Positions 3,900-41,661 of a DNA stretch of 64,000 nt are shown piece by piece. A model generated the notes under the pieces. It was not told where the DNA came from and did no database searches. It saw only the letters and a program-made list of their open reading frames with translations. The position numbers and the translations under genes were made by a program. The stretch spans positions 372,001 to 436,000 of the forward strand of contig JBLWGC010000213.1 in NCBI GenBank assembly GCA_048772705.1. The letters run 5' to 3'. Numbering within the stretch: the stretch's first letter is position 1; every line of letters begins with the position of its first letter. This DNA comes from Leidyana gryllorum EB-2025a. Its lineage: Eukaryota; Protista; Apicomplexa.

Positions 3900-4630
3900 A
3901 TGGCATACATAGAAATTACCGAGAGCGGACGACCATTTGGGTGGATTACATTCGAACTGTTCGAGGATCAATGTCCAAAGGCCTGCCAAAACTTCAGAAT
4001 GCTATGTACTGGGGAGAAGGGTATCGGCAGGTCGCAGAGACCACTGCATTACAAGTAAGCGATCGCTCTCACGTATCAGGCGACCGCTGGCTGAATTATC
4101 AATAGGGGTACGAGCATTTTTCGCATAGTGCCTGGTTTTATCATCCAAGGAGGTGACATCGTCAATGACAATGGTACATCGGGGGAGTCTGTTTTCGAAA
4201 CGACGTTCTTTCCCGATGAGCGGAGCGCACAGCGCCACGACTGCGCAGGCCTCCTCTGCACGGCTTCCTTGGGGCGCCCGAATACTAACACCAGTCAGTT
4301 CTACATCACAACCGGTCCGTGTCCTTGGCAGGACGGCCGGGATGTAGTCTTTGGCAAGGTATGAAAAGATCTCATTTAAGTGACATTAAGGGGTACCATC
4401 AGGTGGTGGGAGGGATGAAGGTCGTTGCAAGACTCGACAGTCTTGGCTCTCCCCGAGGCTCTGTCGCAGCAGACATCCGCATTGGCGATTGCGGTGCCCT
4501 GCCCTTCAAACCAGCTTCGGATGTTGACAGCTTCATGCAGCCGAACTCTTCATCGAGACGCGGCACTCGCTTGTCGCACTTCCAGAGCAACGGCTTTCTG
4601 AGTACCGACAACTGTTCTGAAGGAGACTAA
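3900..4630 (+). CDS. Cyclophilin-type peptidyl-prolyl isomerase (3 exons)
   Basis: Spliced '[26 protein letters not shown]...LHYK|[17 protein letters not shown]...[22 protein letters not shown]|VVGGMKVV'. Introns at 4055..4105 and about 4359..4402. Confidence 0.9.
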
Positions 4631-28934: not shown

Positions 28935-30101
28935 TTACACAAAGACACTCCTCAACGGAGGAAATCCATTAAATTCGACAGCTGAGTAGCTCGCGGTGTA
29001 AGCACCCGTGGACAACCAATACAACCGGTCCCCCATGGCGACATTTAGCGGGAGGTTGTATTTGTGTTGTTCGTACATAATATCCGCCGAGTCGCAGGTG
29101 GGCCCGGCGATAATTACCTCCTCAACCTCTCCCGTCTTCTCCGTATAGATGGGGAACTTAATGGATTCATCAAGAGTTTCGATGAGACCAGAAAACTTGC
29201 CAACATCTGTGTAGACCCATCTTTCAACTGCCGTACGGCTTTTGCGTGCGACTAGCACAACTTCTGAGGCCAAAACACCTGCATCTGCAACTAATGATCG
29301 GCCAGGTTCCAGGATAATCTCGGGAAGGTCGGTACCAAAACTTTCAGTGAGGTACCGCGTGATCTCGGACGCATAGACCGACAGTTCATTGGTCCGCGTC
29401 ATGTAATTGGCGGGGAAGCCGCCGCCTAAGTTGATCATTTTCAAATGAATGCCATCCTCTTCGCGAAGACGTTCGAATATGACCTTCACTTTAGCTAGCG
29501 CTGCATCCCATGCACTAATTTCACGTTGTTGGGAGCCCACATGGAAGCTGACGCCATACGGAATCAGCCCCAATTCTCTAGCAAGAATCAGCAGATCCAT
29601 AGCCATATCAGGCTGGCAACCAAATTTGCGAGAAAGAGGCCAATCTGCAGTGCTCGACCCTTCGGTCAAAATCCTAACGTATATCTTGCTTCCTGGCGCA
29701 GCTTTGGCGATGTTGCGTACGTCAGCTTCCGAGTCGGTGGCGAAGAGTCGAACCCCTTTCTCGTAGAATGATCGGACATCTCGTGACTTTTTGATTGTGT
29801 TGCCGAACGAGAGGCGATCGGGGGATACTCCCGACTTGAGGACTTTCTCCAACTCGTAGATCGAGGCAATGTCGAAGTTGGAGCCCTTTTCCGCCAGCAT
29901 ATCAACGATTTCATTCGCTGGGTTTGCTTTGACGGCGTAGTAGATTTTGGCGAAGGGAAAGCCCTTGACTAAATCGTCATAGGCCTTTGAGATAGTTGAT
30001 AAGTCGACGACAAGTACCGGAGTCTCCTGGTCATCAGCGCAAGCTTTGATCTGCTTGAACACCTCAGGAGGGTAATAATCGGCAATTTTGGCGACCGACA
30101 T
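28935..30101 (-). CDS. speC: Ornithine (or lysine/ornithine) decarboxylase, fold type III, bacterial SpeC-like; intronless CDS
   Basis: YAVKAN (PLP lysine), FDIAS, FHVGSQ, GGGFP, EPGR, GPTCD and GAYT. Bacterial-style segments ADWPLSRKFGC and YSAVEFNGFPPL. 388 aa. Confidence 0.93.
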   Translation of the reverse strand: MSVAKIADYYPPEVFKQIKACADDQETPVLVVDLSTISKAYDDLVKGFPFAKIYYAVKANPANEIVDMLAEKGSNFDIASIYELEKVLKSGVSPDRLSFGNTIKKSRDVRSFYEKGVRLFATDSEADVRNIAKAAPGSKIYVRILTEGSSTADWPLSRKFGCQPDMAMDLLILARELGLIPYGVSFHVGSQQREISAWDAALAKVKVIFERLREEDGIHLKMINLGGGFPANYMTRTNELSVYASEITRYLTESFGTDLPEIILEPGRSLVADAGVLASEVVLVARKSRTAVERWVYTDVGKFSGLIETLDESIKFPIYTEKTGEVEEVIIAGPTCDSADIMYEQHKYNLPLNVAMGDRLYWLSTGAYTASYSAVEFNGFPPLRSVFV

Positions 30102-32109: not shown

Positions 32110-32238
32110 GGCGAATCAATTGACACCAAAGATGCAATTAAGGATTTCGCAGAGAAGTGAGATTACAAAGATTCAATCAACATCTATGAGCCAACCCCTG
32201 CATGCACCACCCCCCAAGTCTGGTCACTACGAAGTCCA

Positions 32239-33210
32239 ATGTTCTGTGGTTTCTTAAAGCTGGTGGGTGCAGTTATAGCACCCCAAATCGTTCTCGGTCA
32301 CGGCACACTCTACTGGCCGACTGCTCGGAATGTAGCCAAGAGTCACACTTGTCCAACGTGTCCTAACGGGCCCTCAGTTTGCGGATCGGGGGCTGGAGGG
32401 CAATGGCTGGCAGACGACACGGAGGCCACGAAGCTGAATGGCGACTACACTACGGCCTTGACCCAGATCCAAGCTGGTGGTACTGTAGAAATTCAAGCTT
32501 ACTTTTCGGCTGCTCACTTGGGTCTCTTCGTTATTGAATTATGTTCTAATCCAGGGAACGTTATCACTGACGACTGTTTCGTACGTCTACAGCGTGATCC
32601 GACGGATACCCGCTGGGGTCCTTATGTGGCTTCTACCCCCGACGTCTTCTACCTGCCGGATGACACCTGTACAACGTCTACCACGGCCACGAGCCCCCTG
32701 CGAGCGAGGTTCCTCATTCCCGAAAGTGCTGCGACCAGTCATGGCATCTTGAGGTGGCACTGGCAATCGGGCAATTCGTGTGATGCCCATCCCAACCAAT
32801 TCCGGAACTCTTTGGCCCCTGAGCTGAGTGCATGGACATCTAATCAGAATGGGCTGACTTGTCGTGCGGCCACTAGTGGGTTGCACATGTCATGCGGTAC
32901 CAACTGCCCGACGAAAGCGTGCAATGGCGAGCAGTTCCGCTCGTGTGCCGACGTCCATGTTGTAGCACCCGGTGGTTCCATTACGACCACGCAGCCACCG
33001 ACTGAGACTGTGGCGCCAGGAGGATCAACGACGATGAACGCCGCACACACTACGACCTGTCATCATGTGAGTACCACCACACCGTGTCCTCTGCATACCA
33101 CGGAGGATCATCATGGTGGACATGGTGGTGGTGATAGTTCTGACACTGACCCAACCGGGGGTTGTCATTGTCAAGCACGTCACGGTGCCCATGTATTTCA
33201 CCATGCTTAA
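32239..33210 (+). CDS. Secreted lytic polysaccharide monooxygenase (AA15/AA10-like) with a Thr linker and His/Cys-rich tail; intronless
   Basis: 20-aa signal peptide, then mature His1 'HGTLYWPTARN'. Second His in 'AAHLGLFVIELC', plus 'ILRWHWQSGNSC' and 'EQFRSCADV'. Confidence 0.85.
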   Translation: MFCGFLKLVGAVIAPQIVLGHGTLYWPTARNVAKSHTCPTCPNGPSVCGSGAGGQWLADDTEATKLNGDYTTALTQIQAGGTVEIQAYFSAAHLGLFVIELCSNPGNVITDDCFVRLQRDPTDTRWGPYVASTPDVFYLPDDTCTTSTTATSPLRARFLIPESAATSHGILRWHWQSGNSCDAHPNQFRNSLAPELSAWTSNQNGLTCRAATSGLHMSCGTNCPTKACNGEQFRSCADVHVVAPGGSITTTQPPTETVAPGGSTTMNAAHTTTCHHVSTTTPCPLHTTEDHHGGHGGGDSSDTDPTGGCHCQARHGAHVFHHA

Positions 33211-40655: not shown

Positions 40656-41661
40656 ATGCCTGGGAAAGCTGGTGAGCAAACATCTAGCTCACCCCACCAT
40701 AGACGAGTGTTGTCGCCCAAGTTCAGCACAGAGGCTGAGCTGATCGAGTCGGACGAAGATGCTCACCCGACGGCCAGTGTGATCTCAATTGATGACCATC
40801 CCGATAGGCATACTGCCTCGCAAGACGGGCAGGAGATCGAGTACGTCGAAGTGCTGGTGCCTGAAACAGAGGAGAGGTTTGAGGAGAAAATAGTGCCGGT
40901 GGAGGTTGTCAGTGTGGTGGAAGAGATCCGCTATGTACCTCGCATTTTCGAGGTTGAGAAAGTCATCGAGATTCCGGTGATTGAGTACAAGGAAGTTTTG
41001 GTGAGTGAAGTGTTCTGTGGCTGTCCGAAGGCGCTTGGGCTCTTTTGCTGAGAATGCGTTCGAAGCTGTGCGCCTGATCTGCTCTGCTTTGCTTTGCTGT
41101 CTGATAGCCCGCCCTATTTTGCAGGTGGAACGGGTTGTGGAGGTGCCGGAAGTTGTGGAGCAGGTGGTGGTCAAGGAAATTGCGGTACCTAAGTATGTAG
41201 AGATTGACGATCCAGTGTTTATCGACCTAGAAAAGGAGATCGAAGTACGGAGGCGTATTCCAACCGCCGTAGAATCTATCCAGACGGTGGAGTTTCTGCT
41301 CCCCAAGATGAGAGTGGAATACGAAGAAGTACACGTTCCCTGCTACGTTCCAATGTTCATCGAAGTCCCAGTGCCCGTCGAGCAGATGTGCGAGGAGAGT
41401 CGGGCTGAGGCCGAGGCTATTAATCGTGAAATCGTTATGGCCACCTCTACACAATTGCCAAGCTTGTGTGTCTTGGAGGAATTAGCGAGCCGGGTGAACA
41501 ACTTCCACCCGGAACTGGCCACTGATCCCAACACTCTTATTGCCCAATGGCAGCATATTGGGAGCAGCGGTAGTCGACGTACAGTGCCCCGCCCCTGTCT
41601 TGTCGACAATCAGCCTGAGGTTTCGCATGACCCCCAACTCAAATCTGTTGATCTAGTCTAG
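40656..41661 (+). CDS. Alveolin / inner membrane complex (IMC) protein
   Basis: Val/Glu/Pro repeats EKIVPVE, EKVIEIP, ERVVEVPE and KEIAVPKYVE. One intron at about 41001..41124. Confidence 0.85.

Follow-up and report, generated by a model that had tools for sequence, protein, structure and literature searches.

The Plasmodium ookinete chitinase is a secreted GH18 enzyme that acts on the arthropod peritrophic matrix. To our knowledge, how gregarines feed, and how they cross or live against this chitinous lining, is an open question. Oxidative attack is the chemistry of lytic polysaccharide monooxygenases (LPMOs), whose family AA15 has already been listed for algal Alveolata, Ichthyosporea, oomycetes, animals, and viruses (PMC5823890). 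Two AA15 enzymes pair an axial Phe with chitin specificity: TdAA15B from Thermobia (PMC5823890) and AaAA15A from the crayfish-plague oomycete Aphanomyces astaci (PMC8393829). Here, we describe an AA15-type LPMO gene from the gregarine Leidyana gryllorum EB-2025a (assembly GCA_048772705.1), located in a 64,000-nucleotide stretch of contig JBLWGC010000213.1 (positions 372,001 to 436,000, forward strand), hereafter the window. The gene is a single uninterrupted open reading frame (ORF) of 323 amino acids at window positions 32239–33210 (+), and its self-match contains no internal stop. An earlier note, made from the sequence alone, had placed a secreted histidine-brace LPMO at 32239–32965; those limits cover the signal peptide and catalytic domain but miss an 80-amino-acid C-terminal extension. 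We consider it moderately probable, from sequence, modeling, and analogy, that the enzyme oxidizes host or dietary chitin in the arthropod gut.

In the literature searched, the coverage of which is incomplete, no LPMO has been reported in gregarines or other Apicomplexa. The gene brings a known family into a lineage where it was apparently unreported. It belongs to a distinct subfamily that includes paralogs without the brace and, in most members, a C-terminal module not described before. We expect the reaction itself to be that of other LPMOs, and AA15 use has precedent in an arthropod parasite. What the locus offers is a divergent subfamily that scores at or below the Pfam threshold, paralogs that have lost the brace naturally, a module that may prove to be a new carbohydrate-binding type, and named, expressible enzymes with which to approach gregarine feeding and gut colonization.

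Family assignment and gregarine relatives

Pfam returned no match for the full-length 323-residue protein. The mature domain alone scored 22.9 bits against LPMO_10, for which the cut-off is 23; a paralog on contig C211 exceeded the cut-off at 35.9 bits, and seven of seven close homologs matched the model. A profile built from seven sequences retrieved TdAA15A as its sole PDB match (E 1.8e-9). With a 43-sequence profile, TdAA15A (5MSZ) was again first (E 4.7e-24), followed by AA13 (3.6e-8) and AA11 (0.04), and no AA10 passed. Armadillo-repeat PDB matches were rejected as artefacts of summed low scores.

The AlphaFold (AF2) model of the enzyme (predicted local distance difference test, pLDDT, 97.3; predicted template modeling score, pTM, 0.93) adopts the immunoglobulin-like beta-sandwich fold of LPMOs. 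Its best structural match is likewise 5MSZ (Foldseek E 1.3e-9; Z 17.3 over 166 residues), ahead of AA13 (14.2), AA10s (about 12–14), fusolins (~11), and X325 (10.0), and the top 45 Foldseek matches at E ≤ 1e-3 are all LPMOs or LPMO-like. The nearest Atlas models are algal LPMO_10 (AA15) clusters with a template modeling (TM) score of 0.77, one of which carries a CBM1. Because 5MSZ ranks first by both profile and predicted structure, ahead of AA13, AA10, and fusolin, the enzyme is, on these grounds, an AA15 and not an AA10 or a fusolin. Of the LPMO families compared, AA9, AA10, AA11, AA13, AA14, and AA16 all lie farther from it than AA15 does. The LPMO and AA15 parts of the earlier assignment ("AA15/AA10, fusolin/GP37-related") are therefore retained. 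The AA10 LPMOs (fusolin/GP37, CBP21, and GbpA) share the fold, the His brace, the Ala, and the axial Phe, but are only distant fold relatives (Z 11–14, with fusolin at 11, versus 17.3).

The catalytic domain (amino acids 21–243; 32299–32967) contains 12 Cys within 223 residues, and the sequence motifs first recognized in it (AAHLG, LRWHWQSGN, and EQFRSCADV) are all present. By alignment of the 43-sequence profile to TdAA15A, His21 (32299–32301), the mature His1 and first brace ligand, corresponds to His1. Ala91-x-His93 (32509–32517), comprising the axial-shielding Ala and the second brace His, corresponds to Ala89-x-His91, and Glu231-x-Phe233 (32929–32937), comprising the second-sphere Glu and the axial Phe, corresponds to Glu182-x-Tyr184. 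The spacing is that of AA15, with Ala two residues ahead of the second His and Glu two ahead of the axial residue. The LRWHWQSGN strand (32749–32775) is a conserved AA15 motif. An end-to-end alignment with 5MSZ pairs residues 1–224 with 1–195, from which T-shaped brace geometry would be expected. AA13 shares the N-terminal CPxC motif with the gregarine enzyme; its other traits are not seen, as the axial residue is Phe, not Tyr, and AA13 is the second-best match.

Secretion is predicted from a 20-residue leader (32239–32298) that lacks acidic residues, has a hydrophobic core (maximum 8-residue Kyte–Doolittle mean 2.3), and places Val and Gly at −3 and −1 immediately ahead of His21. This call is heuristic, combining the −3/−1 rule, the hydrophobic core, and the layout of homologs; the same leader-then-His arrangement occurs in 11 of 11 full-length homologs checked. 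Cleavage at this site would expose His1, as had been proposed.

The Thermobia enzymes TdAA15A and TdAA15B thus resemble the gregarine enzyme in having a signal peptide followed by His1, Ala-x-His, Glu-x-aromatic before an NCAD motif, a beta-sandwich, and many Cys, and they provide the best sequence and structure match. The differences are considerable. Identity to TdAA15A is ~22% over aligned residues, and its axial Tyr is replaced by a Phe, as in TdAA15B. The gregarine protein, from an apicomplexan host, also has a CPxCxNG loop, a His/Cys tail, and a Cys-stapled insertion of ~40 residues. The limits of this insertion are approximate (mature residues 162–198; 32782–32892); profile positions 159–195 are unmatched in 5MSZ, and Trp179 and Cys188 within it are conserved.

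The genome holds three copies, on contigs C213, C211, and C173, that are 45–52% identical and all retain the brace. The closest outside proteins (43–55% identity) include those of Protomagalhaensia wolfi, Blabericola migrator, Gregarina sp. Poly, and Gregarina sp. Pseudo, together with Logan and JGI contigs. The named orthologs were obtained from cockroach-gregarine trophozoites that had been washed and picked by hand (PMC8051059). They are therefore transcripts of the parasite's feeding stage in the gut, not products of host genes. The matches that could be named included none from Plasmodium, Toxoplasma, or Cryptosporidium, which does not by itself prove absence, and motif scans of viral contigs, GTDB genomes, and metagenome contigs yielded no close relative.

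The nearest named non-gregarine sequences are AA15s of dinoflagellates (Amphidinium and Crypthecodinium), Ichthyosporea, and algae (EsV-1-166-like), at 24–33% identity. These share CPxCxNG and the axial Phe, and include the nearest Atlas folds, but a long branch (1.36 changes per site, 100/100) lies between them and the gregarine sequences. A tree of 41 sequences, which covered gregarine-type, dinoflagellate, ichthyosporean, and other protist AA15s, placed 21 gregarine-type sequences on one side of that branch. It did not resolve their position relative to the other protist groups. A gregarine-type apicomplexan host is supported.

Across the family, 12 complete members (the three genome copies and nine homologs) keep both His and an axial aromatic residue. 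By alignment, six others have lost one or both brace His, including the sole Gregarina niphandrodes match (GNI_141260), and these fall inside the gregarine clade. The brace-less paralogs (P0011, P0012, P0013, P0014, P0016, and P0021, the last being GNI_141260) preserve the disulfide framework. Judged by sequence, they are candidate non-catalytic chitin-binding proteins.

C-terminal extensions

Most family members end in a module of ~60 amino acids with six conserved Cys. Its predicted structure consists of four helices (pLDDT 98) and found no match in Pfam, Atlas, or PDB (best Z 3.8). Instances were located by sequence at L002:2362–2550 (+) and L003:1285–1479 (−) and in L023, L025, L021, L022, and L024. 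Within the genome, the module also terminates a divergent GH18-like protein on contig C213, whose matches are weak but all to GH18-family proteins, and it is found in an expansin/GH45-like double-psi beta-barrel (DPBB) protein, two mucin-like secreted proteins, and one small secreted protein. Because this distribution fits that of a carbohydrate-binding module, we propose the six-Cys module as a candidate new member of that class.

Two of the module-bearing proteins have unusual architectures. The GH18-like protein (C213:293500–298500, −; L028) consists of tandem, intron-containing domains so divergent that Pfam misses them. They carry DFNME in place of DxDxE, and the last is followed by one clear and one weak six-Cys module. 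On contig C82 (L025:709–1671, +), a secreted expansin/GH45-like DPBB domain, unexpected in an apicomplexan, is joined to the module by a Pro/Val/Thr linker.

The copy in the window ends differently. A Thr/Pro/Gly-rich linker with a duplicated VAPGGS (32968–33045) leads into a tail rich in both His (12) and Cys (4) (33046–33207) that replaces the six-Cys module of the paralogs. This tail is private to the window's copy, and no copy of the module lies near the gene. A His-bearing disordered tail of an AA14 reportedly binds copper (bioRxiv 10.1101/2025.11.04.686606), and the tail described here probably binds or buffers metal as well.

Probable substrate and role in the gut

The AA15 gene does not stand alone. 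The genome also encodes two NagA-like genes, a GH20 whose N-terminus resembles a signal peptide, and no fewer than five genes each for GH18 (DxDxE intact in the four read) and GH19; spliced chitinase and other genes were searched exon by exon, with no joined model. No chitin synthase candidate was found in the assembly with PF03142, for which the control was detected, or with PF01644, for which it was not. From its gene content, the organism seems equipped to degrade and catabolize chitin and not to make it. Gregarine chitinases have already been annotated in G. niphandrodes and observed in cockroach transcriptomes (PMC8856671).

Several of these genes are clustered. Tandem arrays of four GH18 and four GH19 genes lie at C143:43500–53499 (L026) and at about 1.675–1.681 Mb of C230 (L031–L038), and a NagA-like gene is ~29 kb from the GH19 array. 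On contig C42 (L032), a 702-residue open frame with a signal-peptide-like start combines Trp-rich repeats resembling bacterial-type chitin-binding domains with a GH19 domain.

We favor chitin as the substrate because the axial Phe and the chitinase and N-acetylglucosamine (GlcNAc) catabolism genes fit it. In the mechanism we envisage, signal cleavage would expose His1, which with His73 would bind one Cu, alongside Ala71, Glu211, and the axial Phe213 (mature numbering; residues assigned by alignment). After reduction, H2O2 or O2 would be used to cut crystalline chitin, probably at C1 by AA15 precedent. Through the resulting nicks, the chitinases (GH18 and GH19) and the GH20 that the parasite itself encodes may gain access to the chitin, with GlcNAc processed via NagA. 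The genes for these steps are present, and their joint action is what we would predict: oxidative chitin attack coupled to GlcNAc use. The target is likely chitin that the parasite does not make, whether host peritrophic matrix, gut cuticle, or ingested chitin.

Such activity would serve crossing and attachment as well as feeding at the trophozoite stage. Sporozoites of gregarines are found in the ectoperitrophic space (PMC3332534). The earlier note had proposed a chitin-cleaving invasion or attachment factor; arthropod-gut chitin is a plausible target. Because the orthologs are transcribed in established trophozoites, feeding or niche maintenance is suggested at least as much as invasion. Together, the AA15 and chitin-digesting genes suggest that these parasites erode, and may eat, the lining of the host gut.

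Two described systems offer parallels. By analogy, AaAA15A is a functional precedent for the use of AA15 by an arthropod parasite: it and its kin are secreted AA15s with an axial Phe, often with a small uncharacterized C-terminal module (PMC8393829). Aphanomyces astaci differs in being an oomycete with 31 copies that attacks external cuticle, compared with three copies, an all-helical module, and a gut habitat for the gregarine. The Plasmodium ookinete chitinase is the other parallel, as a secreted apicomplexan enzyme directed against the peritrophic matrix; it is hydrolytic, not oxidative, and unrelated in sequence.

Several observations weigh against a chitin-oxidizing role. The axial Phe is only a correlate of chitin specificity and occurs equally in dinoflagellate and other protist AA15 relatives. 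The two surface tyrosines on either side of the TdAA15A active site have no counterpart in the window's copy by alignment (Tyr24 is replaced by Thr17 and Tyr166 by Cys161); this pair is a common AA15 feature that does not define the family, and the first tyrosine is kept in most orthologs. The window's copy lacks the six-Cys module, and the loss of the brace in several paralogs implies that some family members can do without catalysis. The chitin synthase negative is itself weakened by an assembly of unknown completeness and the silent PF01644 control.

The alternative that survives best is an active LPMO directed at a dietary polysaccharide other than chitin (cellulose, hemicellulose, or starch) in the gut lumen. 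TdAA15A reportedly cuts cellulose as well as chitin, the starch-active AA13 is second-best by structure and profile with a common CPxC motif, one of the algal AA15 clusters nearest in Atlas carries a CBM1, and the expansin/GH45-like protein bears the same six-Cys module as the LPMOs. The axial residue is Phe, not Tyr, however, and the accessory hydrolases found target chitin or GlcNAc, although cellulases were not searched for. We regard this alternative as unlikely.

Slightly less likely still is a non-lytic protein with a copper- or metal-binding, redox, or adhesive role, comparable to X325/Bim1 or GbpA, whose tail in the gregarine enzyme would serve to sequester gut Cu or Zn. The His/Cys-rich tail and its AA14 counterpart, the brace-less paralogs that persist in gregarines, and the missing flanking tyrosines would suit such a protein. 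It is harder to reconcile with a complete catalytic constellation that includes the second-sphere Glu and axial Phe, with a fold far nearer to AA15 than to X325, and with a tail that no other member shares.

Remodeling of the parasite's own gametocyst or oocyst wall, which the earlier note had offered as an alternative, has some basis: insects use AA15s on their own chitin (PMC5823890), and protists with walls possess AA15s too. It is disfavored by the failure to find a chitin synthase with PF03142 or PF01644 and by transcription of the orthologs in wall-less trophozoites, and we consider it improbable. Although arthropods are the best-known carriers of AA15, a contaminant from the host or elsewhere, or a gene newly acquired from host, virus, or bacterium, is largely refuted and very improbable, given a gene-dense 466-kb contig (in a 15.5-Mb assembly) carrying RPB2, Vps52, and myosin, a third-position GC content (GC3) of 0.57 against 0.56–0.62 in neighbors, three paralogs on three contigs, nearest kin from hand-picked gregarines in one clade, and no close relative in viral contigs or GTDB genomes.

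Returning to chitin oxidation, a broader scheme can be put forward tentatively, and we would sooner doubt than assert it. Terrestrial eugregarines may possess a complete secreted chitinolytic system (AA15, GH18, GH19, GH20, and expansin-like proteins) that grazes the peritrophic matrix for carbon and nitrogen. Several of its parts would be tethered by the six-Cys module and would feed GlcNAc catabolism, with brace-less paralogs as chitin adhesins and the His/Cys tail capturing copper.

Gene structure and surroundings of the locus

Colinearity with homologs derived from transcripts makes the proposed lack of introns secure across the catalytic domain. In the tail, a GTGAGT at 33067 is a candidate splice donor. 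Beyond it, however, the frame continues without a stop and remains rich in His (9 in 47 amino acids), an outcome reproduced by 0 of 5,000 shuffles, and none of the hypothetical splice joins, when translated, restored the six-Cys module. Short introns apparently interrupt a homolog in sample SRR31860988 (L012:2299–3557), so not every member of the family seems to be intronless.

An ApiAP2-type motif, TGCATGCA, lies 40 nucleotides upstream of the gene (32199–32206). We rejected it as evidence: it is the sole copy in the window, where chance alone would give about one, and it is absent upstream of the paralogs. Synteny with foreign loci did not extend beyond one weak match 28 kb away, at 3936–4361. 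That match (29%, E about 3e-6) is to a hypothetical protein of G. niphandrodes whose gene lies 4 kb from that species' brace-less paralog, and it is possibly relic synteny. At 41005–41661 (+), a Val/Glu/Pro-rich repeat resembles alveolin proteins of the inner membrane complex (IMC), with no Pfam score. Two kilobases upstream of the LPMO gene, an intronless fold-III ornithine/lysine decarboxylase (28935–30101, −) reads as bacterial-type, and its sequence makes horizontal transfer possible.
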